From Diadema antillarum (taxonomy: Eukaryota), in assembly GCF_040938485.1 (NCBI RefSeq), contig NW_027272035.1:248001-312000 (forward strand): a stretch of 64,000 bases of DNA. The letters run 5' to 3'. The notes beneath the pieces are model-generated. The model was given only the letters and a program-made list of their open reading frames with translations. It searched no databases and was not told where the DNA came from. This document shows positions 10,101 through 62,226 of this stretch, in pieces (position 1 is the first letter of the stretch; each line of letters begins with the position of its first letter). A program made the position numbers and the translations under genes.

Positions 10101-10577
10101 TCAAATTACTAACGCTTATCCATCGCAGAAGGAGGGGTGATATGATTGATGTCTACAAATATGTCCATGGCTTATATAACACTGACACTGACCTGCTACA
10201 TCTCAATAATGAAGATAGAACACGTGGTCACACTCTGAAGCTGAAGAAGACATTCGCTCACCTAGATGTTAGAAAGTTCTTCTTCTCAAATAGAGTGGTG
10301 GAATCATGGAATAAGCTACCAGAAGATGTAGTCAGTGCCCCATCTGTGAACTCCTTCAAAAACAGACTAGACAACTACTGGAAAGAATTGCCCTCTGTTT
10401 ATGACCCTGAAGGATACTAACAGATGTCCTGAATCCTCCCTCTCCACACACACACCTTGCCATAGAACCACTCGTAATTGAAAGATTGATTCAAATGACT
10501 ACCAATCGATCGATGAACAGGCCCGGACCTACTAGCATCGATGGATTAAAGTAAAGTAAGTAAGTAAAGTAAGTAAA
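7120..10577 (+). mobile_element. CR1/L2-clade non-LTR retrotransposon, 5'-truncated, ~3.4 kb
   Basis: ORF1 C-terminal remnant at ~7252-7548 (KDLTPLQR...WIRRNGKVI), ORF2 with endonuclease and RT domains, a short 3' UTR, and a tandem (A)AAGT tail at ~10548-10577. The 5' boundary is approximate and no TSD was found. Confidence 0.9.
7590..10420 (+). pseudogene. LINE ORF2 (apurinic endonuclease + reverse transcriptase) with one frameshift at 8040-8042
   Basis: Endonuclease motifs: YTNADTL, GITE, GVVYRSP, LGDFNFPEIDW, SDH. RT motifs: YRPVSLT, QHGF, DFMKAFDSV, GIPQGSVLGP, FADDTK. ORFs 7338-8090 and 8042-10420 fuse in frame if one A is added to the AAA run at 8040-8042. Confidence 0.9.
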
Positions 10578-33822: not shown

Positions 33823-35312
33823 TCATTCCGCATCATGTGGAATCCAGGAGAATGTTCTTCCCAGCAGAGATTCAAGCTCGGCGTCATATGGCCTATAGTA
33901 TTCTCTCAGCTTTCTCATGACCTCATTATCCACTTCCGGATGGTGTCTCCCCTTGACCTTTCCAGCACAGGCGTGAACCGGCTTGGCCTTGCAGTAAAAT
34001 CCTTTGTGTTTGTCGAAATATACACTCTTCTCGTTGAAGAATTTTGGCAGCCCAAGAAATGTCTCCATCTGCAGAGATTATGACACAGTATGAACAGTGC
34101 GGTGTATTATTTCATATTTTAATGATCTTCCAGATTTAATTTTGCAGTAGCAACGCTTACAGTCATGGTACAGTATCGAACTATTAGTTCATGGTGTCGC
34201 TCAACACAGGATGCAAATATACCCCCGTTCATTGCGCGATTGAGTAACACATATAATTAGATATTAAATATTTCAAGTTTGTTTTTGGAAAAAGTTACAG
34301 TCTTCCCTAAAGGCATATTTCTCAAATATAAGTGATAAAAGAAGTGAAGTGTTAAACGTAAAACATATTATGTTCCTATATCTAAGGTCAATGACACGGT
34401 TCTTTGTAAGAATCAACTCACCTCTTGTAATGCTGGCAGTGGGTTTTTAATGAAGGCGTCTCCATCAATCATAAGAAACTGTTTCCTTGGAAACACCTTT
34501 AGCCACTCCCTAAAGTAGATGACGTAGGCTCCGTGAACCAGGATGGCGTTATTACTGTTGACCTCACCGTTTGGCCGAATGACCGAACCCTCGAACGTGG
34601 TGTTCAGGTAGCAGAGAGCTTCTTGGCCCGGTGGCGCCACACGTGGTATGAAGAACTCGGGCCAACCAATGTGAAGAAGATGCAGATAGTCAGACACTGC
34701 CCTGACAACCGGGTCTCGAATGATGACGATGAACTTGGTGTCGGGCATGACAGCTTTTATCTTGGAGGGTGCAGAGACATCGAATATATAGGAAGGTGTC
34801 TTTTCCATGGTAACTTCATATTTAGACGAAACAGGCATCTGATCCCTATACCAGTCCAGACTTTCGTTCTGGCGCTTGTTCCAGTAATATATCTCCTGTG
34901 GCGCTGAATGGACCAGGTTTGGATGACTATTCAGGAAGAAGGAGAGGGCACTTGTCCCACACTTTTCCACACCAATCCCAATCGCTTGAGGCAATCTCTT
35001 CTTGCAGTCGAGGTCGGCCACGGCTTCGTCAACCTGTTCCTTATAATGGCGACAGCTCCGGACAGCGGCTACTGCTGACAGCTGATTTTTCTGGCGTGTT
35101 CTTGTGCTGATGTTTATAAAACTCATTTCCTCTGCAACAAACGCTTTCACGAGCTGTCGCCTCGATGGCTGCGTCTTTACATGGACTGGTTTGAAAGTGT
35201 TGTCAAGAATTGTTGCTGTCATGTTGTGCGTTATGGCAAGGACCATAGCAACAATGAACATACCTAGCAAGATTGACTTGATGTTCCTGGATGCCCACAT
35301 CATTGATGGCAA
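33823..35312 (-). CDS. HS3ST-fold type II membrane sulfotransferase, paralog 1 (378 aa)
   Basis: Coding exons 35312-34422 (donor GTGAGT) and 34068-33823 (acceptor TGCAG), phase 0. N-terminal hydrophobic anchor, 5'-PSB loop IGVEKCGT, EKTP, 3'-PB IRDPVVRAVSDY, and C-terminal KGFYC...KGRHHP...FSW. An acceptor near 35387 implies an upstream non-coding exon. Confidence 0.92.
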
Positions 35313-38300
35313 TCACCCAACGTTCTATTCCGGACGATCCGCAGGAGCATCAACACACTGACACTGAGTGTCTTCTCAGTTGCCCTGGAAAGATGGCACG
35401 GAGTGAAATGTTTTCAAAAAATAAAGGGAGATTATTAATGATTTAGACATACAGATCCCCATTCAAATACACAAATAAACTTCACTTAAACATAAATAAG
35501 TCCTGAGTATTTCATATCAGGTCTTCTAATTTGTTCTTGAACGAACTCCGTGAAAAAAATCTAGATTCTTGTAACCAGCAATTGGCATGAAACAACGGTT
35601 TACTATTTTCCTACTTTTGCCCATTCAGTGCACATAGCGGCCACCACTCGAGTTTGTGATTCAGTGTTTATTAGAGGCATAGAAAATAAAAAATCATCAG
35701 GAAACATGATTAATACATTAAAAAAGACGAAAGTAATGAAGATTTTTGAGACGCATTAACCTATCGTCTCGTTAGTAGACGGATAAGGATGGAAAAAAGC
35801 TCACAATCAATCATATCCATAATGATTCATGTTGAAGACAGGCCATTTTGGTATATTCAAGATATGTAGTAAACGTAACTACAAAGTAAAAAACCTGTAA
35901 CTGTTGGCCCGTTACCGTTTTGTCAATGAAAATACTATGGCTCAATAGCAGATAGTTGAACAGGCAGATCCCCTTTAGAAATTTCAAACAAGGAAATTTC
36001 ATGCGATTTGCATAATTGTGAACGTACGTAAATTAACGTTGTACATGTTGATAATATACAAGTCAGCAAGATAATAATGCCGCTGAAGCAACGAACAACC
36101 TCAGTATTTATAGCAAACAACCAGTGCACGAAATTTTATGGGACCACTTAGAGAGGAACTTAACTCCAACGATGTTAATCTCCAATCTAGAACTTTCCAG
36201 GTTTGTAACAAGACAAACGCCTGGTGGGCCCTCCCCTGTTAAATTAACAACATAAACTGTGACTTTCTTTCAGTTTTCCGTTGGATTAAGCATGACTGGT
36301 GTCATTTCGCCTACTGCCGATCAAGGAAATAAGTTTTACGTTTGGCATTAGTAGCGTTTGAAATCAAACTTACCTACACAATGGCGTCCACGTCAAAGCC
36401 CATGATTCTTGCAATACACATAGGCAATGTGATAGCACCGCCTTCTTGTACTACAGACGATGCTTCGTAAATATTCAGAAGTCTACTTAAAATTCTATTT
36501 CTGAACCCACAGTTCTTTTGGTGTGCAAGGCATTGGTGGTTCTATCATGAAAAGAATGAGGCATGTCTCTTCTTGGTCAAAAGTTTACTTAGCTTGGTCC
36601 CCAAGGCGCAAACTAAGCATACCAGGTCAACAGACTTAGCGACTTCTTTGTTCAGCATAGCGAAATCGCCAGACCGGACTCAGGCCTCCCCCACTGGTCA
36701 GTATACTGACTCAACTCGATCTTTAGTAACCACTGTCTCAACAATATCATGCTGGTGCACGAATTGTTTGTATCGTCCTTCGGCTAACAAATTGTTAGCA
36801 GTTTGTTAAAGGTATTTGTTTCATGATACTGCCCCCTCTCAGTACCTCAGTAGGCTTGGTCGTCCAAGCGGATAAGGTATGAATAAGAAACCTCTTCGTC
36901 CACCCGACAGAGATGGTAAGAAGCCCAGTTAGTCCGGAGGGTTGACCTGCTTTTGAATGAAAAGTTTTTGTGCGTCTTTTTTTCTTCCTCAGTTTCTTGT
37001 GTTTGTTCTTCCCCACAAACTCTTTAAATAACACTGGCGAAATGGTACTACAATGTATAGGTAAAGCTATACGATGTTGTATATGCCAGAGGTATCCCCG
37101 ACAGCTTATGCTTAAAACAGACACTCTTACCTCTGATATTTATATACCGCTAACATTTTGGCTTTGACATTTCTACGTCTGAGATTTTAACTATTCACGT
37201 TTCACCTCTGACATTTTTACCTTCGACAAGCTGTATCTCCGAAATGTTATGACTTTTGAAATTTCATGATAAAAAATGTTATGAATTGAAATAAGATTTT
37301 CTACCTATATGGATTGTGCAGAGTATTGAAGTGTCATGGATGATATTGAGCGCCGAAGATAAGTCGAATCGATTTTCCTTATAATGATATAAAACAGAAA
37401 CGTAATTGCTTGATCCGTACTTGCAGAGGGTTTTTGAAACCAAGCATACCTTAATTACAAACATTAGAATATCAAAAGTGGTGGAAAAATAGTAGTGTCT
37501 TAGTCCATAGCAAATGTTATGTTTTGGTTCCTAATTTGTATTTGGAATTCCTTAATTGCACTATCCCGTTAATAAATTATGATCTTAGGTTTCACATGCT
37601 TATGCAATGATTATTGTTAATTTTCAACAATTATATGTATTATTTTGGGCATAGAAATTAAATTAAATTGAAAGTGAAAAGTGAAATTCGTTGAAGACTA
37701 GTGAATCATATCTGTCGAAGACTAGTGAATCATATCCGTCGGTTCTATTTTAAGGTGGCAAGTCTGGGATGACAGATGGGTCTTTAGTGTTTTGCATTCT
37801 CTATCTATTTTCCGATATGAGAAGAACAACAGATCAGTGTATATCAAATCGAGTATAAGAATGCACAGGACGGCTGGATTGCCCTATAACTTGGCTGATC
37901 CAACAAGGTACGACTGTTCTACCAAGGGGTTTAGATTTAAAAAGAAAAAAAAAATCAATGATTTGATACAATTACATAGAAACATCAAATTGCTCCCTGA
38001 TAAGTAAAGGCTTGACCTCCTATTACCACTTGGAAGAAAGCTGTAAAAGTGAAAAAGGGACAGGCCCACGCCTTCCTGTGTCCACAGTAGGCATAATAAT
38101 GGTGCATTGTCTCCATTACAATGATCCCATTACGGTTACGGTTAGTCATGTTAGTATTTTCTTCTTCTTTTTTTCAAACTCCGCCAATTAATTCTTTCTC
38201 CTCTCTCTCTCCCTCTCTCTTTTGTCCTCTAGCTGTGAAGTCTTACTATATCAATACAATGTATGGAAACTCTCAAACATTAACATAAACAACATTACTT

Positions 38301-38627
38301 CATCTACTTGATTATTCCAGCAGTGACTGTTTACGGTTTAAATCATGCTTTCAAGTGGCAAGCCAATGAGAGATGGGGCCAGAATTAAAATTGTCCCGTG
38401 AAGATTGGAGGTCCGGATGAAAGAAATTGAATTTCAGATCTAATGTTGCAGGTAAGCATTTTTTAAACATCCAGAACAACGCAGAATTAGTCAAGCAAAA
38501 TATTAGGGTCCTACTTGCTCGAAAGCCTTCAGGCGGAGAGAAGCTTATGGGAAAATGATAAACACAATTGATATATTCAGTTCAGTTCAGTTTCATTTAT
38601 TTTCCATTCGACATCCAACAAAGAGTA

Positions 38628-39140
38628 TGGTTGGGGCACCACCTATCGACAGGGCACCTTCCCATCGACACCCTGCGTATCATGGCTGTTTGCGTATAGA
38701 ACAAAAAAGTACGCGCGGGATTAAGTGTCATTAGCTATAAAAACAATAAAAACGAAGAAACGAAAATCAAACTCAAACAAACCAAGCTAAAAATTACACA
38801 TCCGATCAGTAACGACGCATGGCTGTGAAATTCACGTGTATTACCTATGGCCTGTGAAATTCACGTGTATACCTATGCTGTGAAATTCACGTGTATACCT
38901 ATGGAGGAGAGGGGGTGTCGATCGCAAGGTTCCCTTTTTAGCTGCGCGAAGAAAACGGAACGCACGCACTAAAATTGCGCTATTTTAAAACGGAGATTCA
39001 TAATCAACGAGACGGTCACGACATTCAAAACTGCAGTATTTATGGCATATTTGAGGTAAGAATTAGGCGGATTTGTATTATATTTTTAGAATAAACAAGC
39101 TACAGATCCTTAGGGTGTCGATACGTGGTACCCCCAACCC
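38628..39140. mobile_element. TA-flanked MITE with an internal 3 x 26-bp tandem repeat
   Basis: TA|TGGTTGGGGCACCACCTATCGACA ... TGTCGATACGTGGTACCCCCAACCC|TA. Internal CTGTGAAATTCACGTGTATACCTATG x3 at 38823-38903. A related fragment lies at ~7040-7115. Confidence 0.7.
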
Positions 39141-40985
39141 TACAACAAAATATAAAGTATGCACTGCACCATCACATTGTTTGAAAAAGAAAATACATAA
39201 CGCAATATGAATCGTTAAGTATATGATAAGCACAACAGAGTAGAATAGCTAAGAACATTAATACATACTTTGACACGTGTGACATAAAAGGATGAGAAAA
39301 AAGGTGATCCACTTAAAAGCAAGGTTTGTAATACGAAGATCACTCAAAACGTAATAATAAGTCACCAAACAACATAGACATCATTATAAACAGTAATCAT
39401 TAAGTACAAAAAAGAAAAGAAAAAAAAAACCCAGACTAATCTTACAAAGTTACAACCTGATGCAGCCACTATTCGCTGAGCCGTGTTATACCCAACAAAA
39501 GAATGATGGACAAGAATAACAAACAAACAATTTATAGTAGATACAAACACACATGCTCGTGTTTAAGAAATGTTAAAATGTTAAAATATCACATTTGTAT
39601 TGTATGGATGACGCCTGCAGCTATTACAAGACACCGTGAAAGTTTTCAATGCACTTTTCTCTATTAGTAAGAGTTCTGTTGGATCCCATGCCTTTCAGCA
39701 ATGCTTCTTGATGATAATGATAAAGTTCATCTGAAAGAAACTTGTAATCTATCAATCATCATCGTATCCCGATAAAAATCAATTGATTCACAGTGGAAAA
39801 AGTAGTGGAGATATCTCTCTACAAATCCAATTGAATAAAAAGAAATGTTGGAGAAAACCACAAATTCATATTAGTTACGATATGAAATCAACAGGTTGCT
39901 TTTCTGTACCAATCTGACCGAGTTCTGGAATAATGCGGCGAACCTCAAGAGCAGTTTCTTCACTATGCCGGCCATAATCTGTATTCATCCTTCTTGAGCG
40001 CGTTAAGGAAGCGGATTGCTCAGGTAAAGACGATTCCAAACTCGTTATTTTAGTGCGGGCTTATGAGAAGATACTAGTAATCTATATACAGTATATGGAG
40101 TGCAGTGAGGGAAAGACAGCTACATCACTTTTCTGTCCGTATTTCTGACTCTTTTATTACTCGCCTTCTCACAATGGCGGAGTCGGTCTGGAAGTGGATT
40201 CAAAACTTTTTAAATACTGATGTGGTTAGTCCTATATGCAGATACCATGAATTTTACGCCATTGCATACATAATTTAAACATTAGGCCTATATTCCGATT
40301 ACTGCTGCAGTCCACTGTAGCATGGGGGTAGTTTAGACGATTTACATGGCCTTGTTATGATGGCGTCCAGTTATCAGCTATAATCTACATTTTCGTGTAT
40401 CATGGTTTACCAGCCTAGAGGCAGGGAGGTGCTAGAGGGTTGCTCTCGTATATAGGCAACCTATAGGTTGCATGATAGAGAACAGTTTTGCAGGCCATGC
40501 CTGCCTGCTAAAAACACCCTCTTTTTGTCAACGGGCTGACCAGCTCCGATTAAAAGGAGCCTTTTCCCCCTCTTGTTTACCATACTTTCGGTCAACAAAG
40601 TTTCAATAGGAGAAAGGAAACCTTAAAATACCTCCACTTCGCTAAGAATGTGTCGTGTCGACACGTTATTCCTGCAGTTAAACGACGGTTTTCGTTAGTT
40701 GCTCTAAATTCACTTAGGTCCTACAGCTGCTTTTTCAGTCTATCAAAATCATCACTTTGAGATGAACTACACCGATTTTCTCTCCTTATAATCTGTATGA
40801 TTTTATAGTTGCTTTTCAATTTCATTTCTCTGTTTCAACCAAGCCTCCAGCTCCCAGTTCCATTTTTTTTTTTTTGATGTTTGCATGTTTTGTGTGCGCG
40901 CGTAAGTGTATTTGTAAAATGACCGATTTAGTTCCCGTCTGCTGTATCAAATCAAGCTTGGTATGCGCGGTAAAGATATTTACTG

Positions 40986-41678
40986 ATAGTCAGGTCGCTT
41001 AATGTCAAAATTCGGGCTTACCGTTACAGAGCGGATAAAAGCACCAAATTTGGAGAGGTGATCCCCTAGGACCTACTCATTGATATTAGAGTAGGGGCCC
41101 TCTGGAATTTTTCGATTTTTAGGGTGAAAATGCTGAATTTTGATATTTCTTTATAATATGATATATATACTGTATTGTTAAGTAATAGTCAGGTCGCTTG
41201 GCGAAATTACCATTACACAGCAGATAAAATCATCAATTTTTTTTTCATACGGATTCCTTTAGGACTATTAAACAATATTAGAGTAGGAGCCCTACTGGAT
41301 TTTTTTTTTTGTAGAAAAACACTAAAAAGATCAAATTTGAAAATGGCCGACACTTAATTGGCAAAACCCTCACTTTTCATGTCATATGGGTGATTCGATC
41401 GATGACAATATATTACATTTGTTTTTGTATTTTTGGTTTGCTTTAGAACCTTGGTTTGAACATTGCGTTAGGAGCATTATATTCTTGTGTAATGTAGAGT
41501 CTCTGCTGGGGGAGGGGTAGGGCAAAAGGGGCGGGACCCCCCCCCCCTTCAAAAAAAAAATGGTTGTTCGCTTGTTCTTTTGCGTGCACTTTTTCCTCGT
41601 TTTGCTCTATACGCGGGGGATAAAAACATAAAATTTGGCGCATGGATTCCTTGAGGACTAGGAACAATATTAGACAAA

Positions 41679-41717
<39 letters not shown>

Positions 41718-42075
41718 AGATCAAATTTCAAAGTGGCCGACACTTATGGCAAACCCCTCACTTTTCATGTGATATTACTTATAGAATGGTTGATACGATG
41801 ACTATATTAGTATATCTTTATATTTGGTTTGGCTTAAAACCTGAATTTGGACATTGCGGTAGGAGCATTGTTTATATTCTTGCGTAATGTAAAGTCTCTG
41901 AAGGGCTGGGGGAGGGGTAGGGCAAAGGGGGCGGCCCTCAACTTAACAAGGGGTGGTTCGCTTGTTCTGTTGCGTATTTTTTAATCGTCTTGCTTCTTTA
42001 TACACGGCGGATAAAAGCATCAGATTTGGCGCACGGATTCCTCATCAGAGTAAGAGTCCTCCTGCAATTTTTAAG

Positions 42076-42123
<48 letters not shown>

Positions 42124-42140
42124 AATCAAATTCCAAAATG
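40986..42140. repeat. Left arm of a large modular inverted repeat
   Basis: Starts ATAGTCAGGTCGCTTA; internal degenerate ~400-bp modules separated by (CA)n; reverse complement of 43879-45012. Confidence 0.8.
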
Positions 42141-42956
42141 GCCAGCACTTAGGGCCTATATGGCAAACTCCCCGCTTTTCATGCCATATGGGTGCGATTA
42201 GAACCTTGATTTGTGCCATTGAGCTGAGTGTGTAACAAAGCTTTCAACAGTTTCTTCACTCCCAAAGCAGAGTTCAACTGGAACAGCAATAATGGCTCGG
42301 AACTGTTCAGCATTGGACAGGAGTGACTTGTAGGCATCTGTCTTGTCACCACTTGCCCTTGAACTCTTCAAGAGACACTTTAAGGGTTGAGCGGTGTCTT
42401 GCTGGCAAATCACGATCTCACTTTATAATAAAAACCATGATGGATCACATTCTGAAAAGCAAAAGTATTGGAATTTAATCCAATTATTGTAACAACTTTG
42501 ATATCCATCACATCATTTCACTTACGGTGGATTGGAGTAATGTTGTCATGCATTTGTTAGAGAAGACATTTCTGGTAAAAATTTATCTCTAAGTATGTAC
42601 TCGTATAATATTGCCTTGGAATGTTACAGCAGAAAGCACATGTACATGATAAAGGTAATCATCTGGGGGAAAGAAGGACATTATACAGTTTGTTGTAAAG
42701 CGACTATATGATAGTTAGTTAGTTCTTTTCCTGCAAAATAAACCTCCCTCAGCATGCAAACGCAACTTTAAACATCTTTAATCCAAATATATATTGGCCA
42801 GCACAACTATATGACAAGAGTGTCTTTCTTTCTGTCCTCATTTGGTACAATTATCGGTAAAATTCCTGGTAAAAGAGAAAGCTCACCAATAATCTCAGAA
42901 GGGAAATTTTCTGGTATACTGAGACACATATCAGTGGCACAAGAAGAAAGTAGTAG

Positions 42957-43149
42957 CAGTAGAATGCACCCCCGTTATAGCAAACGTCGTCGGGACCGGC
43001 AGCTTTTTTTACCCTGTGATATCGACAATTCGATTTATTATAAACAGAACAGTAATGTATAGAAAGATAGATGAGAGTTTTGGGACCTGATTTTTTTACT
43101 TAGTTGTTACGAAAATGCTTACCGCGTTCGTCATAACGGGAGTGCACTG
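42957..43149. mobile_element. Tigger/pogo-type MITE, degenerate
   Basis: Right end CGTCATAACGGGAGTGCACTG|TA and partial left end TGCACCCCCGTTATA. A similar right end lies at ~55880-56040. Confidence 0.45.
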
Positions 43150-43228
43150 TATCCACAAATAAATCTTACTGCACTGAAAAATTATTTCAGTGTGAAATGA
43201 TTCTTAGAGTCTCAGAGCATGGGAGTAG

Positions 43229-43391
43229 CAGGGGTGGATCCAGGAATTCCGTGAGGGGGAGGGGCGCCTTTACAAAATTAATTACGGGGGCGCATGCCCT
43301 CCCCCTCCATTTTTTCTTTTTATTTCTTTGTTTTAACAAAGAATAGAAGGGGCGCGCCCGGTGCGCCTCCATGCACCCATATCCCCAACTG
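43229..43391. mobile_element. MITE, 5-bp TSD family (hAT5-like)
   Basis: AGTAG|CAGGGGTGGATCCAGG ... CCCCAACTG|AGTAG. Confidence 0.78.
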
Positions 43392-43654
43392 AGTAGGAAA
43401 ACTGTTTATTTTAGAAACTATCTTCTGGCTGTCTAAACTGTATACATTATACAGTTGTATTTGATTAGTATACAATATGCGTATATAATATTTGATCAGA
43501 ATTCTGCCAGCTCCATGTTTCAGATGCTTTGATGTTAATCATGGTCTCAAGTTTGAGTATGTTTTCAGTTCCATGACAAATACATCAATTCACAACAGAT
43601 CTGAACTTAGGAATATATGACCACATTCCCTTACTTACACAATGCAGTATATAT

Positions 43655-43834
43655 ATCATAATTATTATAAAGAAATATCAAAATTCAGCATTTTCACCCT
43701 AAAAATCGAAAAATTCCAAAGGGCTCCTATTCCAATATGAATGAGTAGGTCCTAGGGGATCACCTCTCCAAATTTGGTGCTTTTATCCGCTCTAACGGTA
43801 AGCCCAAATGTTGACAATAAGCGACCTGACTAAG
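43655..43834. repeat. Extra short module of the inverted-repeat family
   Basis: Reverse complement of 40986-41160; ends TAAGCGACCTGACTAA. Confidence 0.75.
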
Positions 43835-43878
43835 AGAATGTGATAACATATAAGTTCAGATCTGTTGTGAATTGATTT

Positions 43879-44275
43879 ATTTTGGAATTTCAATTCGCGC
43901 GCGCGCGCGCGTGTGTGTGTGTGTTTAAAAATTGCAGGAGGACTCTTACTCTAATGAGGAATCCGTGCGCCAAATTTGATGTTTTTTTTCCGCCGTGTTT
44001 AAAACAAGACGGAAAAATACGCAACAGAACAAGCGAACCACCACTTTTTAAGTTGAGGGCCGCCCCCTTTGCCCTACCCCTCCCCCAGCCCTTCAGAGAC
44101 TTTACATTACGCAAGAATATAAACAATGCTCCTACGGCAATGTCCAAATTCAGGTTTTAAGCCAAACCAAAATTAAAGATATATACTAATATTGTCATCG
44201 TATCAATCATTCTATAAGTAATATCACATGAAAAGTGAGGGGTTTGCCATAAGTGTCGGTCATTTTGAAATTTGA

Positions 44276-44317
<42 letters not shown>

Positions 44318-45012
44318 TGTGTGGTTAGTCTAATATTGTTTCCTAGTCCTCAAGGAATCCGTGTGCCAAATTTTATGTTTTTATCCCCCGCGTATAGAGC
44401 AAAACGAGAAAAAAAAAGCACGCAAAAGAACAAGCGAACAACCATTTTTTAAGAAGGGGGGGGGGGGTCCCCCTTTTGCCCTTATACCTCTCCCCCAGTA
44501 TAGTTCAGAGACTTTACATTACGCAAGAATTAATTCTCCTAACACAATGTTCAAGCCAAGGTTCTAAACAAACCATAGATACAAAAACACACGTAATAAT
44601 TGTCATCGTATCACCCATATGACATGAAAAGTGAGGGTTTTGCCAATTAAGTGTCGGCCATTTTGAAATTTGATCTTTTAGTGTTTTTCTACAAAAAATC
44701 CCGGAGGGCTCCTACTGTAATATTGTTTAATAGTCCTAAAAGAATCCGTGTGAAAAAAAAATGATGCTTTTATCCGCCGTGTAATAGTAATTTCGCTAAG
44801 CGACCTATTACTTACGCAATCCAGTATAGGCCTATATATATATATATCATATCATAAAGATATATCAAAATTCAGCATTTTCACCCTAAAAATCGAAAAC
44901 TTCCAGAGGGATCCTATTCTAACTTTATTCAATAGTCCTAAAGGAATCCGTATGCCAAATTTGATGCTTTTATCCGCTGTGTAACGGTAATTTCACTAAG
45001 CGACCTGACTAT
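43879..45012. repeat. Right arm of the large modular inverted repeat
   Basis: Same modules in reverse order and orientation with (TG)n tracts; ends TAAGCGACCTGACTAT. Confidence 0.8.
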
Positions 45013-45087
45013 GAAGCCCGCATGAATATTAGAGCTTTTCTGACTGCCAAATGCATTTTCGGAAATTTGGAAGATTCATCATTCATT

Positions 45088-45184
45088 CAATCAATCAATC
45101 TATCAATCAATCAATCAATCAATCAATCGAATCAATCAAACAATCAATCTATCAATTAGTAAATCAATCAGTCAATCAATCAAT
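45088..45184. repeat. (AATC)n microsatellite
   Basis: Direct reading. Confidence 0.9.
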
Positions 45185-45589
45185 AAAGTATCCAGTTTTA
45201 AGAAGACATCTGTTTCAACAAGTAATTACTTTATTAAGGAGACACTCGACCTTAAGGAGACAATTTGCGTGATAATATGAACTTCTGAAACTCTGTACCC
45301 GGTATAACCAATTCATATTTGTTCAAATACAAAAGTCTGAAAATCATCCGGGGCTCTCTTTTAGTAGCACCTCAAACACTGTCTTAATAATCTTCTTTAT
45401 TTGGATACGATGGCATGCATTTAACAAGACACTGTTGCAGCCACGAAGATGATAAATCAAGTAGGTTACTCCAAGAAATCTAACAAACGTTTGAACAGAA
45501 CCACCGAGTAAAGTCCGTATGTATCAAACAGCCTTTACCTGTTTTTTTTTTTAATCCCTATATACTCTGCATGGGTTCCAGCGACTTCT

Positions 45590-46135
45590 TGTAACAATGG
45601 GTTAAAATATACAGGGACGTAGAAACGACTTTAAACACGAATGCATGCATAGAAAATAGCAATGGGTAATCACTTGCAGGTATAGAAACAATCTTTAACA
45701 TGAACAAGATGAATGGCTGGTTATGGTAAAAGCAATGGAATGCATGGGTGAAATACAAGCACGCAGAAATCACTTTAAACACAGCTGCCTTCTATAGATT
45801 ATGGTGTGTAATAGCAATGGGTTATTACGTGAACATAGGACCCATCTTAATGGCTACTTATCTTGCTTATGGTATGGGTAATGGCTTGAACGTAGAAATC
45901 ATCTTACACACAAATGGCTTCTTATGGCAGTAGCAATGGGTAATTACACAGACGTGGAGACCATCTTCACGAATGTAGAGATCACCGTACACACATTAAA
46001 CGGCTAGATGGTTAAAGCAATGCGTAATTACATGAATGTATAAAACAGTTTCATGAACGTAGAAACCATCTTTAATACAAATAGATTGATTGGTAATTGC
46101 ATGGACGTTGAAACCATCCTTTACACAAAAGGCTA
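45590..46135. repeat. Degenerate tandem array, ~8 units of 60-80 bp
   Basis: Recurring AGCAATGGGTAATT...GAACGTAGAAACCATCTTT blocks. Confidence 0.6.
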
Positions 46136-46271
46136 GTTGTCTTTTTTTTTATAGATACGGTGAAGAAGTTATTCATTAACTTCCTTAATGTTTAAATGAA
46201 AATGAATTACTAGTAGTGTTGCTGTGTATTTAACTCCAGATCATAATTGCTTGTTTGTAAAGCGCATACTG

Positions 46272-46437
46272 GGCCCTGTTGCATAAAACCCTTACCGCTG
46301 GACTTACCGCTCCTTTCCAGCGGTAAGTCTTTAAATTAGCGGTAAAATTTATAATCCTTGATGCTGATTGGCTGTGACGCCTAATTTTGACGGTAGTTAC
46401 CATTGAAATTCAACGGTAAGTTTTATGCAACAGGCCC
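46272..46437. mobile_element. PIF/Harbinger-type MITE (CTG target)
   Basis: CTG|GGCCCTGTTGCATAAAAC ... GTTTTATGCAACAGGCCC|CTG. Confidence 0.75.
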
Positions 46438-46585
46438 CTGGTAAATAAGACTGATTGATGATTAGTATGCGCCATAAAGTCACTATTGTTCTTGTTATCA
46501 TGGAAGATTACAGTTCCACGAGAGGCAGGTGTATTGTTTATACATAAATTTCCATGATAACGACACTGCGAAAATCATCCCAACT

Positions 46586-48049
46586 TTATTCAAGTCGGGT
46601 CCAGGTAAATGTCTGTCCCAGCAATCTCTCTAGTTCAGCGTTATACGGACGATAGTAATCTCTTAGTTTCATTATGACGTCATCGTCAACTTCCGGATGG
46701 GGTATTCCCTTGAACTTTGAAGCGCAGCGTTTGACTGGTTTGGCTTTGCAGAAAAATCCTTTCTTGTCATCGAAGTACACGCTCTCCTCATCGAAGAATT
46801 TTGGAAGTCCAAGAAATTCCTCGATCTGTGATGATGCGAAATTGTAATGGAGATGTTGGCATTAACTCACATACCACTGTATTTACATGATTTATTGCAA
46901 TAACTTACAAGACAAAAATGGGTTCCATTGGCAGGCAAATCTGCAAGGGTACATGCTTGGATGTCAATAAAGTATCTTGGCTAGTGCTGACAATGTAGAT
47001 TACTAGAATTCAGGGAAAGGAGGGTGAATGGGATCAAGTGCTGAATCAAACTGGAACACTGACTTCATTAGAATGTAAAGTGTGACGTGTTAGTTTCTGT
47101 CCAAATTTGTATATCACAATGTTGATAAAAGGGTGTTTTAATAACAACTAAATGTTAAAAGTTAACTACTCACCTTCTGCAATGTTGGCAGTGGGTTTTT
47201 GATAAAGGCGTCTCCATCAATCACGAGAAAATGTTTCCTAGGAAACACCGTTAGCCACTCCCTCAGGTAGATGACGTAGGCTCCATTTACCAGGATGGCG
47301 TTATCACTGTTGACCTCGCCGTTTGGCCATACGACCGAACCCTCGAACGTGGTGTTCAGGTAGCAGAAGGGCTCTTTGCCTGGTGCCGCTACGCGTGGCT
47401 TGAAGAACTCGGGCCAACCGATGCCTTGCAGATGCAGGTAGTCGGACACTGCCCTGACAACCGGGTCTCTAATGATGACGATGAACTTGGTGTCTGGCAT
47501 GACAGCTTTTATCCTGGTTGGTATGGTGAGATCGAAGATGTAGGAAGGTGTCTTCTCCATGGTGATTTCGTGTCTAAACGAAAACGGCATCTTGTCCCTA
47601 TACCAGTCCAGACTTTCATTCTTGTGTTTGTTCCAGTAAAATACCTCCTGGGGCTTTGAGTGGACTAGGAAGGGGTGATCTTCGAGAAAGAAGGAGAGGG
47701 CACTTGTTCCACATTTTTTCACCCCAATTCCTATCACTTTCGGCAATCGCCTCTTGAATTCCAGATCGACCGCGACCATGTCATCTTTCCCTTCTTGGAT
47801 GCATGTTTCGCATTTGCTGAGCACTGACCGATTGCCTCCTGGGTAGACGTCGATACCACTGTATGCAGGAGTCTCTCGCTCTGCACCCACCGTCTGGAAC
47901 CGCCGCCTTACGGGTTGTATCCTTTCAAGCACAGGTTGGAAGGTCTGTTTTAGATACAGTGGTGGGGACAGGTTGAGGGTGACGATGACCACCGTTACAC
48001 AGAGGATCACTCCCGTGAGGTACACCTTAGCGTTTCCGGAGATTTGCAT
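46586..48049 (-). CDS. HS3ST-fold type II membrane sulfotransferase, paralog 2 (371 aa)
   Basis: Coding exons 48049-47174 (donor GTGAGT) and 46825-46586, with the same intron position as paralog 1. Motifs IGVKKCGT, EVFYWN, EKTP, IRDPVVRAVSDY, KGFFC...KGIPHP. The ORF-track start at 48082 is TTG; the first ATG is 48049. Confidence 0.92.
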
Positions 48050-49660
48050 GGTGATATACTGGTGCACTATGTGATTATTCAAATCAGTTCCCTACTTCTC
48101 CGATCTACAGGTTCCACTGGACACTGCTGAGGCGTTTTCCTATTAAAAACATGATAGGCATTATAGTTCATTCAAAACATATCCAACACATATGAAATAT
48201 TCTGCGAAATGAAGTTAGGATGTTTTATAATGTTTGAATTGAACAACCTAATGTAAAGACGGAAATAATGCATCCTGTGTAGACGAAGACAAAGTAAAAA
48301 ATAAGAAAATAAACATGGAGGAAAAACAAAACAAACGGGAGGAGGGATGTACTAGCAATTAAAAGAAAAAAATGTTCTCGCTGAATGCCCAGTAAATGCC
48401 TGAATGATTGAAAGGAACGTGCTCTCCCAGAGCATACTAAATAGGGGCAAAGTATTTCTAATGACTATCTTTGTTAAGAGATCATTTTGTATCTTTGGCA
48501 CTTAACAGATAACGTTTCGTTGTTTCGAGATCAATAACGTGTCAGTTAGTTCCAGATGAAATTGCACAGTATGACGATGAGAACATCCTAACTCCTTCTC
48601 TAACATGTCTAATATTGAGTAAAATGTGCACAAATATCACACACAAACATAATTATGGGCAGGTAATCAATGGGCCACGCAGAGAATTAAATAAATGTGG
48701 TTATAATCATTATCGCCATAATCAATTGATGTCAGTATCACTGCGTTATCAATTTTGAAAGATACCCAATGATTATCATTTATCAGGAATAAGGGATGAT
48801 GCATGTAAACTGAAAAAGACTTATTATTATGAAACATTACAACAGGACATGAACGAATCATGCCTTTGATATTTACCCTCTGTACTTCTATCACAATGTT
48901 GAATCAACTAAAAAAAAAATATGCTGCAAATGTTCTTACGGTCTCACTTGACAGATGTCGATACTTCGAACAACACCATTACGTCTTACACGTCATGCTG
49001 GCTTAAGTATTCCTCCAGCGACACAATTTTGCGACTACAGACGTTAACTACAAGAGGTAACAATGTGCTCGAGAACGGCAGCTCCATGTCAATGAATTCG
49101 GGTCTTCGAGGCAAAGTGTGAGTCTTTTGTTGAGAAAAAAAAAGCGGAACACGTTTTTGTGTTGGGGAAAGATGAACTGTTAAGATGTTTCAGAGTTGCG
49201 CATATTGTTATTCAGCAGCCTCTATGGATCCACACAGGTTAACAACGGAGCGAGTTCGACACATCGCCCTTTCATCATTCTATTCAGCGAGTATGCATCG
49301 CTTTGAGGACTCCACGCTTGGCCCCGCCCCCATTTTAAAGCTGACAAAGTGGGCTGGTTGAAAACAAATTCTTTCTTGAACATGAATTCAGTGGGACACA
49401 TTTATACACTCAGGGAACAGGTCTGTTGATTTTACGTTTTTGATGACCTCCAGGACTAACTGTACTCAGTGATTTTTCACTTGGTGCCAACTCATTTTCA
49501 TGGAACCAAAAACGGATCGAAAAAAATAAAGCACATTTTTCACCCTAGAAAACCTATTTTGAATGTCAGTTTGTTCGCTAACCTAATGTGTATCTCCTCA
49601 TTGCTTTAGAAGGCTATTTTATTTTCTTGTGGGATATTTGCCTTTCATGTATAGTCATTA

Positions 49661-49664
<4 letters not shown>

Positions 49665-49712
<48 letters not shown>
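49665..49712. repeat. (TA)n microsatellite
   Basis: Direct reading. Other simple repeats: poly(C)+poly(A) 18161-18207, (GT)n ~21027-21049, (TA)n ~56669-56711, (ATTAC)n ~58586-58629. Confidence 0.95.
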
Positions 49713-49717
<5 letters not shown>

Positions 49718-52556
49718 TTGGTGATTCTATCCTTCTATGAAGGGTGCTCGATATCCTCAAAGGAAGAGCTTTAGACAGAAGAATTGGAACAAGTTCACGC
49801 GGTTGACTGCAGGTTCATCCGTATTTATTGCAACTCTGAGTTTCATGCAAACTCCATGAGATATATAATGAGCAACTTGCTTCCTTGGTGTTATTTAGTT
49901 ATTTTGTCCACGAGGAGACTGCAAAATACAAGCTTGGCTTTTCAGCACGTCTCCTCCATTTCCCACAACTTTAATCTTAATTCAATTTCATCTGCTTATG
50001 TGAATATGTGATACATAAATTTGTTAACTTCACGCATTTCCTTTGCTACTACATTGTATTGGTATTGTGTTATTTTGTGTATGTAGACGTTTTGCATTGT
50101 TGGAAATGAAATCAATGAAATGAAAATGAAAATATGAAACTACTTCGGATCTAATTTTAGTGAAACTTTCAATTCGGCTCTATTGACATTTTTTAGAATT
50201 TTCAGTGGTACAGTTGTTTAAAATCATGTGTTGGGTTCACTGACAAATAATACAGTCTGTCTGTTTTGCTCTCGTCTTTCTAAGCTGGAAACTTCTTTAA
50301 TGATGGATTGCTCAAAATTTGGTACTAGGTCACAACTTATTGTGACATGCCTCATGTTACCATCGATATAATGATAAGTGTATATTTGCGCTGATTAATT
50401 TGTCCGTTACATGTATTGTAGTTTCGTAAGCTTTGTCGGTATACATGTATTATAGTTTTGTAAGCTTTGTACAATGTATTGTAGAAATGTAACGTAAATA
50501 AATAAGTGAGGGGACTGCACTATACAAGTTCGCTTTTAGCAACCCCTCAATTTTCATTTCCATCAAGTCCTAAATGAAACAAGACGTATTTCTACTGATC
50601 ATGTGACATATGTTGCAAGTATATACCATCATTTTGACGTTTGTATTACCCATGTACAATATATCGTTTGGAAATGAAGACAGAACATGAATGAATGAAT
50701 GAATGAATTGTGCTTTACCAACTTGCGGAGAGAGTACTGTTGTCTTCGTGTCTGTACGAGCTTCTTGGATGTGTGCCTGATTATAGCTCCATCTCTTTTG
50801 GATAAGCTCCAACTTTTGCTCATTGTCCCAGGGCAAGGTTTCCCAGCGAACACAGTAGAACAAATTCTTTTGCGGTTGTAGATCTCAACGCCGAGTGTTT
50901 GAATAAGGCTTCATCTTCAAACCAAGCTACCAGCTTAGGCCTGTGTATGCGTAGTTTGGTAAATAAAGCGAATGCAATAACCCAGTTCAGCCTGTATGCA
51001 TGAGAGATGCAGGAGTTGTTTCCAACAGATTGCCACATGGAGCCAAACTCCTTAGCAACTTTTTCATCCTCCAAGGATTTTCTTAAAACTACAAAGACTT
51101 GTCACTAATTTCTTTTTCCTTCATTGGAGCAGAGTAGCAACGAGGTTGGAGTGATAGTGGAAGCATTTTGAAGAACTACTGCTCGTGTGACGAATCATTC
51201 ATGGTGGTATCGCGTGCTGCTTCGGTGGAATGCGTTCGATGCAGTTGTAAGACTTTCCATGGATACTTCGAGTCACTGTCTATCACTGTACACAGGCCCA
51301 TGTTTAACAAGGCGGATTTGTAGTAAGGACACATTTCTTATCTCGTGTTGTGTTGGAGCAGTTCTAAAATTGTGCTCAAAACATTATGGGGAGGGGTCGT
51401 GGTAAAAACTACAGTATCTTGAAATAGCTGGATGCTTTCCTGACAGCTCCTGTGTTTTACTGTACAATTGAGTTTTATATTCGAGATGTTTTTGTCAAGT
51501 CTAAGGAAAAGATGTTACTGGAAGGCTATTAAACCCACTCTGTGCCACATTGATTACTTGTCCATATGTACATTATGAGTCTGAAATTTGTGCTCATTTG
51601 GCAAAGAATGAGTTAACTCTTAACAAATCTCTTGAACGAGAAGTGTTGATTGAATAATTATTATGTGGAGAAATATCAGAATCTGATTTGTCTTCTGTTA
51701 GTTACTCAACGGACGGTTCTATATATCGTATTTGCATGTTTCCTAACATGAATGCATGATCAGATTCGTGCATGTTAAGAAAGATCGTTTATTGATGATT
51801 TGCAGTAAATCATGATTATTTGCCGTCAGGACAATCAACCCATCTGAACTATCGAGTAATGGACATGGTAATGGAGCTCCTTCGTCAGTTCTTGACAGAA
51901 TCAATTAAATACAGTAGTCCTTATCCAACACTCTGCCGTGGTGTACCAAATCAACTAATACCCAAACCAAAGTGTTTATCAGACCTGGAGAAAAGAAGTT
52001 AGTGCTTTACAGGCATGACAGGTAACGATTATCTTATTTTCTGGCTCCAATTCTTGATAATTTTGTTCCATTGATGTCATGCAAGGAAGGGTTGGAAGAT
52101 CACATCTATCTGATTATTTTCTTTTACTTGTCCACAAGGGTGAAAGATTTACATTCCTAATAAAACTACACCTGTACAAAAAAAAAACAGTCAAAGAAAA
52201 TAGTCATTATTTGGAATATCACGTCCTCAATGCTACTGTTCATTGGGGAACATGTTATTTCCATCTTAATAAATGTCGTAATTTATCAAGCGAAAATGAG
52301 TGTTTTAAGCAAAGAGTCACACAGAAACAAAGTGGTCTGTGATCTCCTCCACACACTGGTCCTAGAAATACTAGGTGAAAACTTAGTAGTAGTCACATCT
52401 CCCGATCTTCTACTGTTATGAAGCTTGGTAAAACAATATCAATTTGTTTGCATGTTTGTTTGTTACTTTGTTTCAGGCCAACGTGCGTCAAGTATTACCC
52501 GTATGCTTGCTTTTATAGGATCATAGGAAATCTAGAAGAATTCAAGACAGGTCGTG

Positions 52557-54179
52557 ATGCACACTCACGGGGAACTGAAGGCTTACCTACTTGGAATATT
52601 TGTAGCAACCACGGCTTTCAGCTTGACTTACTACGCAACATCAATAATTCTAGAACGCTCTTCTGAACCAGTGCCTGGAAAAACCCAACCCTCAAGACGA
52701 CATCTCGGAAGGACGGCTATATTGGGGCAGGATACATTTTCTAGCAATGGGAGAACGCCAAAGGATCGATTATTAGCTGCCACTGCCCACGCGTGTCTCC
52801 AAAGCAGGCCCGGCGATGAAGTCAGTACCGACCTCGACTGCAAGAAGAGATTGCCTCAAGCGATTGGGATTGGTGTGGAAAAGTGTGGGACAAGTGCCCT
52901 CTCCTTCTTCCTGAATAGTCATCCAAACCTGATCCACTCAGTGCCACAAGAGATATATTACTGGAACAAGCACCAGAACGAAAGTCTGGACTGGTATAGG
53001 GATCAGATGCCTGTTTCGTCTAAACATGAAGTTACCATGGAGAAGACGCCTTCCTATATATTCGATGTCTCTGCACCCACCAGGATAAAAGCTGTCATGC
53101 CAGACACCAAGTTCATTGTCATCATTCGAGACCCGGTGGTAAGGGCAGTGTCTGACTATCTGCATCTTCTCACCATAGCCTGGCCCGAGTTCTTCATACC
53201 ACGTGTGGCGCCACCAGGCCAAGAAGCTCTCTGCTACCTGAACACCACGTTCGAGGGTTCGGTCATTCGGCCAAACGGTGAGGTCAACAGTAATAACGCC
53301 ATCCTGGTTCACGGAGCCTACGTCATCTACTTTAGGGAGTGGCTAAAGGTGTTTCCAAGGAAACAGTTTCTCGTGATTGACGGAGATGCCTTCATTAAAA
53401 ATCCATTACCAGCACTTCAGCAGGTTTGTAAGAGATTTTCTCTGTACTCTATTCAGCAGACATAGTTTTAAAAGAGGAGTTGATTCCTACTTTGTCTTCA
53501 TGTCTTTTAGGAAATTTCTTGATAGAACTATGTACATCACATTTATTTCGAAGCCTACTTATCTTCTTGTACCTCTATCTACCTATCTCTCTAATATTGT
53601 GCCATATCTAACTTCCTTACCAACTTACTGGTTTTAAAAAAAAAAGATTGTCGAATTGAGACCAGATTAGACGTCTCAATTCTGATGTCACTTCACCTAT
53701 ACTTTTAACAAAATGTGAGGACGGGGTGATGACCTATACTTGATTCAAAATATTCAATTTTAAAGCTTAGTTCATAACATCATTGTACGATGCATATGTC
53801 TTAGTCATGCAATGTAAAGTATATCTAACTTTCACATGAATATTGATGTCTATTAATAAATTGATGTGTATGTCTTAGTCACGCAATATACAGTATATCT
53901 AACTTTCACATAAATTTTGTCATGTCGTTGCAGATGGAGGAATTCCTTGGTCTTCCAAACTTTTTCAATGGGAGGAGCATATACTTTGACGAACGGAAGG
54001 GGTTTTATTGCAAATCCCTGCCATTTAAACAATGTGCAGGGGAATCAAAGGGAAGGCGACATCCTGTCATTGATGATGACGTCATAAGAAAGTTGAAAGC
54101 GTACTATCGTCCATATGACGACCAACTTGAAAAGTTACTTGGACAAACGTTTTCTTGGTCAGATCACACATTAGAGTAA
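52557..54179 (+). CDS. HS3ST-fold type II membrane sulfotransferase, paralog 3 (370 aa)
   Basis: Coding exons 52557-53423 (donor GTTTGT) and 53934-54179 (acceptor TTGCAG), with the same motifs and intron position as paralogs 1 and 2. An acceptor near 52477 implies an upstream non-coding exon. Confidence 0.92.
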
Positions 54180-54544
54180 ATCCGAAATGAAAAGAGTCAT
54201 AGCTCCAAGAAAGGTTTCAGCCGAAAACAACGCCTCCAACGGGGACATGATAGGCCTACAACGCCTATTATATTTGAACGTTTCTTCACGGGCATTGGGA
54301 TACATGATTTGTAGAACATCGAACAGGAGCAAATATATTGTACATGTAATAGCGGGCCATTATTCATTCTTATTTGTTTGATCCAAGCATTCCATTTGTC
54401 AACTTATCGGTGTTTCAGTCATGTTTTAAAATCTGCTGTCAGCCGAGGATCGTGCATGCACTCGAGCTTCGCGTTACCACATTACTGGCCATCTGCGTCG
54501 TCCAGCGGCGATGTTCTTAGTTAATAATAACATGCTCTTTATTT

Positions 54545-54773
54545 AGAGTAGCCTCATCAGTGTTACCACTGCTCTACCAGAGGACCTTTAATGTCATTAT
54601 CATTACCCTATAGCGTTGCCAGGCACCAATTTACACCATGATCGAGAGTGACATAATGGGTAGAATCGTCTTGTCCAGGGACGTAAGCGGTGTAAGCATG
54701 TGGACTGGATTTGAACTCGGGTCCAGCCTCTGACTGGGAGTCAGGAGTGTTATTCACTATACCACTGTACCCC
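54545..54773 (-). mobile_element. tRNA-derived SINE
   Basis: The minus-strand head has a Pol III A-box-like TGGTATAGTG and B-box GAGTTCAAATCC. It is followed by a conserved-core-like body (GTCCCTGGACAAGACG...CTCTCGATCATGGTGTAAATTGGTGCC). The 3' limit is approximate. Confidence 0.6.
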
Positions 54774-56093
54774 TACAGTTCTGGCATATTGTATTATCTA
54801 CGCTGTCCTCTGTGTATTCTAGGAGTACCTATGTGCTTATTACATTATTGTGTTTTCGTAATCCGACTGCAGTGAAATGTTCAACTCATACTTTGGGTAA
54901 CATAGTAGAAGCTAAATGCCTACATCTTCTTTGTAATGGTAGAGTAGATTTTTTTCAGTCGTTCTTTTTCCTAGGTCGTGGAATACCATTGGTAGTCTCC
55001 ATTTATACTGTTTTGTATACTGTGTTCAGCAGACATGGCAGATGGCATTTGAAAGTCAATTTCTGGTACAGGCGCTCTCCCAAGTTGTTAAGTCGAGTTC
55101 TTTCTACAGTCCCGGTTCGCCGAAATTTCTAGTTACTTGATTTTTTCCTTCGGATCAGCTAAATTTTTATTCAATACAAATTATCTACAGATGTCCAATC
55201 TAATGTGGACTTTATAATACTAAGTAGGTGGTGATTGGTTAAAAGGTATCACTACGGGTGCTATGTAGAGTACAGATGAACTTCAATTTTGTCAGACCAA
55301 CACATTGTACAGTGTTTGTGTTGTACTGTTGAAATAATTCGAATGAAAGATTGTGTGCACTTCATGAAGTTTCAAATGAATAACACAAATGTTTTCACAT
55401 CTCTCTGCTTTATTGTGTGATTTCATGCCATGTATTTCGCAAGTATTAGTGAACATAACATGGCTCTGATCATAAACATGCACACTGTACCCAACACCAG
55501 AATTACATTCAAAACTAAACGTTTTCTTTATCCTAATAATGATAAACCAGTGGTTCATTGCTTTAAACAGCAAAACAAATGGTGATCACCCTCAGAGTGG
55601 AATAAATGCCGTTAAAACTTGCTTTTGTACAATATCAGCTAAATTTCGAAATATTCATGAAGACGTTCTAGGGACAAAATCGTCATTAACCTCTAGCCGT
55701 TATCATTACGTTTAGTTGAACTTCCTCTAAGGTGACAATTACCGCCAGTTTTCAGCGTGATATGAAAATGTTGCACAAAGTAAAGAATAACTTATCATAT
55801 CGCATGAAATTAGGGCGAAACTACATAGGTAGCTCCTACATTTGGGAACAAAGTTTGTATATGGAGTCTAATAACGGACACGGTCATAACGAAATTCCGG
55901 TTTCAACGAAGTAAAAATTCAGGTCGCAACATTATCTCATCTATGTATTTTTACAGTTATTTGTTCGGTTTTAACGACATTTCGATATAGCGAAAGAAAA
56001 CTGTCAGTCCCGAGGAATTCGTTATGACGGGAGTTCACTGTAACCCTATATAAAGACAATTTGATTCGGTTGGTGCCAGAATGTGTCACTGGA

Positions 56094-62226
<6,133 letters not shown>

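Follow-up and report, generated by a model that had tools for sequence, protein, structure and literature searches.

The closest described relatives of the genes analyzed here are the vertebrate heparan sulfate 3-O-sulfotransferases (3-OSTs), in which Lys162, Arg166, Glu184, His186, Asp189, Lys215, Gln255, Lys368, and Arg370 (3-OST-3 numbering, used throughout) are conserved and important for activity, while Arg166, Lys215, Lys259, Lys368, Arg370, and Arg190 make contacts to uronate carboxylates and sulfo groups (PMC8341778). The catalytic base is a glutamate, Glu184 in 3-OST-3 and Glu90 in 3-OST-1 (PMC8341778). The sulfotransferase domain of NDST1 (PDB 1NST, 8CCY) belongs to the same fold family, although NDST is a protein of ~880 aa that carries an N-terminal N-deacetylase domain and makes N-sulfate. 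The current study concerns a stretch of 64,000 nucleotides from the sea urchin Diadema antillarum (contig C1147:248001-312000, hereafter the window), in which three neighbouring two-exon genes, P1, P2, and P3, encode sulfotransferases of the HS3ST type. These three genes belong to an echinoid-specific subfamily inside a large echinoderm/hemichordate HS3ST-like expansion. Besides, the residues that they keep and those that they have exchanged suggest, with a probability that we put at about one half, that their products are active luminal glycan sulfotransferases dependent on 3'-phosphoadenosine 5'-phosphosulfate (PAPS), and that their acceptor differs from the highly sulfated heparan motif on which 3-OST-1 and 3-OST-3 act.

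Six-frame lists of the open reading frames (ORFs) contained three long ORFs of ~300 aa and three short ones of ~80 aa, and reading of the window DNA gave three genes with intact frames, each interrupted by a GT-AG intron in phase 0 at one common position (LQx/xExFLG). P1 lies on the reverse strand, where exon 1 (34422-35303; donor CAAGAG/gtgagt) codes for a signal anchor and a stem, followed by the initial ~190 residues of the sulfotransferase domain that Pfam recognizes as PF00685. Its exon 2 (33823-34068; acceptor ctctgcag/ATGGAG) supplies the last 81 residues, among them the Cys pair and KGR, and the stop codon; these residues correspond exactly to positions 268-348 of the RefSeq protein P0018. 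On the same strand, P2 consists of exon 1 at 47174-48049 (anchor, stem, and domain; donor GCAGAAG/gtgagt) and exon 2 at 46586-46825 (acceptor cacag/ATCGAG), which carries KGI in place of KGR, with loss of the Arg370 equivalent, and the stop codon; both exons match P0003 exactly. P3 is located on the forward strand, with exon 1 at 52557-53423 (anchor, stem, and domain; donor CAGCAG/gtttgt) and exon 2 at 53934-54179 (acceptor gttgcag/ATGGAG; KGR at 54048-54056, followed by the stop codon), both exact matches to P0019. The exon translations are thus identical to the D. antillarum RefSeq proteins P0018 (XP_071477540), annotated as "HS3ST 3B1-like", and P0003 and P0019, both annotated as "HS3ST 1-like", and the full-length proteins were taken from these records. 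They comprise 348-371 aa and have only an anchor and a stem ahead of the domain. The positions and intact frames given for the three genes in the preliminary description were confirmed by this agreement, and every motif quoted there, including SDYLH and the KGIP of P2, was found as written, with each checkable detail correct. The three-gene cluster recurs with identical scores on contig C39; since the 1.75-Gb assembly carries both haplotypes, counting raw matches inflates gene numbers about two-fold.

Membership in the sulfotransferase superfamily is evident from exon 1 alone, which matches Pfam PF00685 (Sulfotransfer_1) at 46-50 bits against a cut-off of 22 and also PF13469 (Sulfotransfer_3). 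Among solved structures, sequence comparison ranked human 3-OST-3 (E 1.6e-31), 3-OST-5, and 3-OST-1 (range to 1e-27) first, with NDST at 1e-14. An AlphaFold model of P0019 (P3), based on 131 homologs, reached a mean predicted local distance difference test score (pLDDT) of 88.7, with scores exceeding 95 across the greater part of the domain, and showed a helix at the N-terminus (residues 6-35). In Foldseek comparisons this model matched 3-OST-3, 3-OST-5, and 3-OST-1 with target-normalised template modelling (TM) scores of 0.90-0.93 and a root-mean-square deviation of ~2 A, followed by NDST, so that the HS3ST fold proposed earlier also holds at the level of predicted structure. The identity to 3-OST-3/HS3ST3A1, 3-OST-5, and 3-OST-1 (PDB 1T8T, 6XL8, 3BD9, 1ZRH), with which the fold is shared, amounts to 32-37%. 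Like the vertebrate 3-OSTs, the three proteins combine a type II topology with PAPS-binding motifs, a Glu base, the EKTP and KGR lysines, and a C-terminal Cys pair; the motifs read GV(E/K)KCGTSALSFFL, E(I/V)(Y/F)YWNK, EKTPSY, and RDPVVRAVSDYLH, and the Cys...Cys pair is followed by KGR in P1 and P3 and by KGIP in P2.

Residue states were counted over nine echinoid sequences, namely the window proteins and their echinoid orthologs. Lys162, Thr165, Glu184, Lys215 (the EKTP lysine), the Arg and the Ser of the 3'-phosphate site, and Lys368 (the KGR lysine) are kept in 9/9, in line with the intact donor and catalytic sites reported earlier. Among the 131 homologs, Lys162, Thr165, and the 3'-phosphate Arg and Ser are almost invariant, as expected for PAPS-dependent sulfotransferases, and the Cys pair ahead of KGR is almost invariant as well. 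This pair and a conserved N-T-T sequon are compatible with a luminal protein.

The acceptor side differs markedly. Unlike in vertebrate 3-OSTs, the position of Arg166 is occupied by Ser or Gly, that of His186 by Tyr or Phe and that of Lys259 by Ile or Leu (Ile in the window genes) throughout the nine sequences, while Asp189 is replaced by Asn and Gln255 by His in all of them. Additionally, Glu170 corresponds to Phe in eight and to Ser in one, and Arg190 to Lys in eight, with Arg retained in one. Arg370 is kept except in P2 of both Diadema species, which has Ile at this position, and the KFKGIPHP motif is also present in P0021, the D. setosum ortholog of P2. In P3 (forward strand), alignments place these exchanges in the 5'-phosphosulfate-binding loop GVEKCGTSALSFFL (52872-52913; Lys and Thr kept, the Arg166 and Glu170 equivalents being Ser and Phe), in the catalytic stretch EIYYWNK (52950-52970; Glu kept, His186 to Tyr, Asp189 to Asn, Arg190 to Lys), and in SDYLH with the longer Pro/aromatic-rich segment that extends to the conserved NTT sequon (53151-53249; Gln255 to His, Lys259 to Ile). 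The trio therefore does not carry the set of heparan-binding and activity residues typical of HS3STs (Arg166, His186, Asp189, Gln255, Lys259, and Arg370), the last of these failing in P2, and the replacement of heparan-contact residues noted before was borne out against the published assignments (PMC8341778). Moreover, the distance from the 3'-phosphate-site Ser to a conserved Trp is 64 residues versus a median of 50 in 53 canonical sequences, and the resulting 14-residue Pro/aromatic-rich insert after SDY is predicted to form part of the cleft wall. The catalytic core has a net charge of +1 (isoelectric point, pI, 7.8) in the clade of the window genes versus a median of +9 (pI 9.45) in the same 53 canonical sequences, and such a near-neutral core would favour a less anionic acceptor.

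The comparison with NDST is instructive with regard to these exchanges. NDST shares the fold family (E 1e-14; TM ~0.6 normalised by query) and has Thr, Gln, Asn, and His at the positions of Arg166, His186, Asp189, and Gln255, as seen in the motifs GTTAL, E-(I/V)-Q-F-F-N, and SWYQH of the Diadema NDST and human NDST1; the NDST motifs GTT(A), E-I-Q-F-F-N, and SWYQH thus stand against GTS(A), E-I-Y-Y-W-N, and SDYLH in the trio. Unlike NDST, the trio is far nearer to HS3ST in sequence, and its Glu-base O-sulfation geometry would be HS3ST-like. Membership in the NDST family was rejected, as the trio has no deacetylase domain.

An exhaustive homolog search returned 613 cluster representatives at E <= 1e-30, and phylogenetic trees were obtained with FastTree on 180 domains and with IQ-TREE under a mixture model on 65, both unrooted. 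Both trees separated two groups, one (group B) containing all canonical enzymes with the Arg/His/Asp/Gln residues and the other (group A, 99% support) including the trio, which falls outside the canonical bilaterian HS3ST clade with 99% branch support in both trees. Orthology to canonical HS3STs was rejected on the basis of this placement and of the residues. The named members of group A come from sea urchins, sea stars, sea cucumbers, and acorn worms, and are listed in RefSeq as "HS3ST 1-like/5-like" for S. purpuratus, Lytechinus, Asterias, Acanthaster, Patiria, Apostichopus, Ptychodera, and Glandiceps; most group A members are single-exon type II proteins. Within this group the trio lies in a nine-row, echinoid-only clade (support 98) of Diadema, Strongylocentrotus, and Lytechinus sequences, nested in a 17-row clade (support 100) that has neither His186 nor Asp189 and whose sister clade retains E-x-H-x-W-D. 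The trio clade is thus separate from canonical HS3STs (support 98-100), which are present in the same genome as well. A bacterial or contaminant origin was also rejected, considering the spliced structure of the genes and their RefSeq urchin orthologs.

These trees also define which features are particular to the trio. Arg166 is present in 0/39 of the sampled group A members, 34/39 have His at Gln255, and all share the longer segment after SDY; the missing Arg166, the missing Gln255 and the longer segment are thus traits of the whole expansion, and only the loss of His186 and Asp189 is specific to the branch. Compared with other group A genes, the echinoid branch additionally lacks these two residues and has gained the phase-0 intron before ExFLG, whose position differs from that of the intron in the HS3ST3-type gene of Diadema. 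The preliminary description of a remodelled acceptor site with a longer Pro/aromatic-rich segment therefore stands with regard to the residue differences, the branch-specific His/Asp loss and the segment itself, but not as a trio-specific feature in its entirety, given that the segment and the absence of Arg166 and Gln255 extend over the expansion and the latter may be ancestral. Likewise, to speak of an undescribed system was too strong for RefSeq-annotated members of a very large echinoderm/hemichordate HS3ST-like expansion. From the canonical enzymes the trio also differs in the 14-residue longer segment, the near-neutral core and its placement in a separate, well-supported clade.

The extent of the family within one genome is considerable. 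A profile search of the whole Diadema assembly gave 96 matching pieces, and after haplotigs had been collapsed at 97% identity at least 29 further distinct intact HS3ST-like ORFs were found besides the trio, mostly single-exon and many in tandem arrays. Canonical residues occur at only two loci of the genome: a single-exon HS3ST1-type gene, L019/L020, with GVRKCGTRALLEML, EIHFFDD, and SDYTQ, and a two-exon HS3ST3-type gene, L071+L048, with GVKKGGTRALLDF, EVHFFDR, SDFAQ, and KGR and an intron at WYR/EQMP. Of these, L019 was included in the trees and falls on the canonical side, while L048 and L071, as two unjoined exons, and NDST stayed outside the trees. A separate gene with multiple exons, on contig C692, encodes the Diadema NDST, and its sulfotransferase domain is spread over many short exons. 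The urchin therefore has the standard genes of heparan 3-O-sulfation alongside the HS3ST-like expansion.

The history of the trio can be followed in the conservation of its coding and non-coding sequences. Purifying selection acts on the catalytic domain, with a dN/dS of 0.16-0.21 for the corresponding portion of exon 1; the stem reaches 0.43-0.54, and dS is saturated in exon 2. Nucleotide alignments between the paralogs are confined to ~600 bp of exon 1 and to exon 2, and introns and flanks cannot be aligned. P1 and P3, which are inverted relative to each other, have in common a ~598-bp tract of exon 1 (34422-35020 on the reverse strand in P1 versus 52830-53423 on the forward strand in P3) with 94.6% identity and long runs of 100%, whereas their stems are unalignable and their exons 2 are only 71% identical; this tract looks like the product of gene conversion. 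Each paralog groups with its own intact D. setosum ortholog (96-99% identity), so the triplication predates the split between D. antillarum and D. setosum, and the conversion probably does as well. Farther out, the S. purpuratus ortholog P0004 has the intron at the identical position and a paralog 10 kb away. The S. purpuratus members have consecutive accession numbers and lie on one chromosome, and the tandem arrays (three genes in Diadema and about six to seven in S. purpuratus) have therefore grown independently in both lineages. Inside exon 1, antisense ORFs of 124 aa were observed at 34533-34907 (forward strand) in P1 and at 52938-53312 (reverse strand) in P3; they are most likely not genes, and their similarity to one another is explained entirely by their position within the converted tract.

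How the three enzymes might work can be outlined from these features. As type II membrane proteins of the Golgi type facing the lumen, they would transfer sulfate from PAPS to a carbohydrate oxygen by the same in-line mechanism as their relatives, with Glu as the base, and Tyr and Asn may stand in for His and Asp, in a manner comparable to the Gln and Asn of NDST. We infer a changed acceptor, probably a neutral or weakly anionic glycan, because the enzymes lack five to six basic or polar heparan contacts at once, a 14-residue insert is present and the charge of the core drops from about +9 to about +1. The fixation of the derived residues across echinoids and the coexistence of canonical HS3ST genes in the genome also favour this reading. 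Several observations weigh against it. His186 and Asp189 are among the residues important for 3-OST activity and both are replaced, so that catalysis could be impaired, and, since the trees are unrooted, group A may lack Arg166 and Gln255 as a retained ancestral state instead of having lost them. Because NDST acts on heparan without the four residues that it lacks, their loss does not exclude a heparan acceptor either, which made the earlier conclusion of a non-heparan acceptor an overstatement of what is a sequence-based deduction. Concerning the topology, the RefSeq model of P1 (P0018) begins at an internal Met (35222) and omits the membrane anchor; given that upstream of it another 30 codons stay in open frame and contain two ATGs as well as a hydrophobic segment resembling the anchors of P2 and P3, this model appears to be 5'-truncated, and the type II anchors described previously appear to be encoded in all three genes even though the annotated P1 does not include one. 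The gene-conversion tract of P1 and P3 lowers dS across that stretch. With regard to expression, the sequencing-run search recovered three runs of one study, and alignment to positions 50500-55500 of the window identified these as DNA contigs only (95-99% identical, from Diadema, covering intron and intergenic sequence, with no splice joint), and the cluster listings contained no transcript-derived protein copies of the echinoid clade.

Taking the same exchanges into account, the trio could still modify heparan sulfate or its precursor in another context or position, for example in low-sulfated or N-acetylated stretches, an acceptor for which the basic cleft would not be needed. All of the closest solved relatives are heparan enzymes, NDST works on the unsulfated heparan precursor with its four "lost" positions occupied by Thr, Gln, Asn, and His, and Lys162, Lys215, and Lys368 are kept in all three proteins, as is Arg370 in P1 and P3. 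We nevertheless regard a heparan acceptor as unlikely, considering that canonical HS3ST1-type and HS3ST3-type genes and NDST are already available in the genome, that the trio no longer has Arg166, Lys259, and Gln255, residues that bind uronate carboxylates and sulfates, that the core is near neutral, and that a single polymer hardly accounts for more than 30 paralogs whose cleft residues are diverse. The replacement of His186 and Asp189 leads to a different alternative, in which the trio would be weak or dead pseudo-enzymes retained for PAPS or glycan binding or as partners of active paralogs; P2 has in addition lost Arg370, and clearly degenerate relatives (P0023/P0170 and L054) exist in the wider clade. 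This appears quite improbable in view of the Glu base, the Lys and Thr of the 5'-phosphosulfate-binding loop, the 3'-phosphate Arg and Ser, and the EKTP and KGR lysines, all invariant in 9/9, of the strong purifying selection, and of the activity of NDST with Gln and Asn at the His and Asp positions. It would take an even more exceptional situation for the three genes to be redundant, unexpressed duplicates heading for decay, with intact frames that are merely temporary. No RNA evidence was found, the run contigs being DNA only, and the family is prone to tandem duplication with some copies broken (L025/L031, L057, L062, and L063), but the paralogs are old, as indicated by saturated dS in exon 2 and unalignable introns and flanks, all three are intact with dN/dS of ~0.2 and an intact D. 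setosum ortholog each, and the subfamily and its intron are conserved out to S. purpuratus, which makes such a decay hardly credible. Active glycan sulfotransferases with a changed acceptor thus remain our preferred interpretation of the trio.

Echinoderms contain unusual sulfated glycans, including the fucans and galactans of egg jelly, fucosylated chondroitin sulfate and sulfated sialic acids, and the sulfated fucans and galactans of egg jelly trigger the acrosome reaction of sperm. In our literature search no animal gene was found to be assigned to the sulfation of these glycans, and no paper was found on the trio clade or on the echinoderm HS3ST-like expansion, nor a characterised member of any of its branches. 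Sea-cucumber genome papers discuss only CHST and FUT expansions; a 2026 preprint describes an unspecified "Sp-3OST-1" with low heparan activity, and a paper in Development lists "HS3ST1 (predicted)" among skeletogenic-cell transcripts, neither of which could be mapped to the trio clade. Against this background, sea urchins have canonical heparan 3-O-sulfotransferases beside more than 30 divergent relatives, and one branch of these, restricted to echinoids, has an intact donor site together with an acceptor side that is rebuilt and has lost charge, and evolves under purifying selection. This branch provides a concrete and cloneable set of candidates for echinoderm glycan sulfotransferases, which is a candidate list and not the discovery of a function. 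As a far more speculative and rather doubtful extension, the echinoid arrays might be sulfotransferases setting species-specific sulfate patterns on a neutral echinoid glycan; if so, an HS3ST scaffold would have switched from a polyanionic acceptor to a neutral one, with the sulfated fucans or galactans of egg jelly or sulfated sialoglycans as candidate acceptors. For annotation purposes, the RefSeq names "HS3ST 1-like", "5-like", and "3B1-like" should not be taken to imply heparan 3-O-sulfation.

Additional observations concern other members of the family. The canonical HS3ST1-type gene occurs twice on contig C21 in almost identical form (L019 at 4363899-4364681 and L020 at 6267543-6268325), and a third copy near the contig end (L057, 6330036-6330759) is frameshifted; these repeated copies reflect either an assembly duplication or a recent duplication. 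A tandem array at C475:743-796 kb and C1714:104-160 kb (L044-L047, L049-L053, L059, and L063) holds at least five to six single-exon HS3ST-like genes in which the EKTP motif has exchanged its lysine (T-G/E-S/N-P) and E-L-(K/N)-F-P-A forms the catalytic stretch, and represents another divergent branch of the expansion; copy L063 is broken. Further broken copies are L025/L031, with an in-frame stop, and the fragments L057 and L062. Among the degenerate relatives, P0023/P0170 of S. purpuratus (XP_001177072, annotated as "HS3ST 5") carries Asp in the place of the Glu base, and its EKTP and KGR motifs read EYTP and IKN, while L054 of Diadema (identical to P0052) is devoid of most catalytic motifs. 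Copies of P0023 are found on numerous short Logan contigs (1.7-2.5 kb), which may be transcripts, and it is possible that relatives of the P0023 and L054 type are expressed pseudo-enzymes.

In the rest of the window no neighbouring genes that hint at a pathway were found, only a retrotransposon of the LINE (long interspersed nuclear element) type and a transposase-like helix-turn-helix ORF. The former, a non-LTR (non-long terminal repeat) element, extends over 7338-10420 on the forward strand, with an endonuclease ORF (7338-8090; Pfam Exo_endo_phos) and a reverse-transcriptase ORF (8042-10420; Pfam RVT_1) that overlap in different frames. The latter is a short ORF with a DUF4817 helix-turn-helix domain (57350-57679, forward strand), probably a transposon remnant. 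Stretches of N occur near 12.2-12.5 kb and 27.1-27.3 kb of the window.

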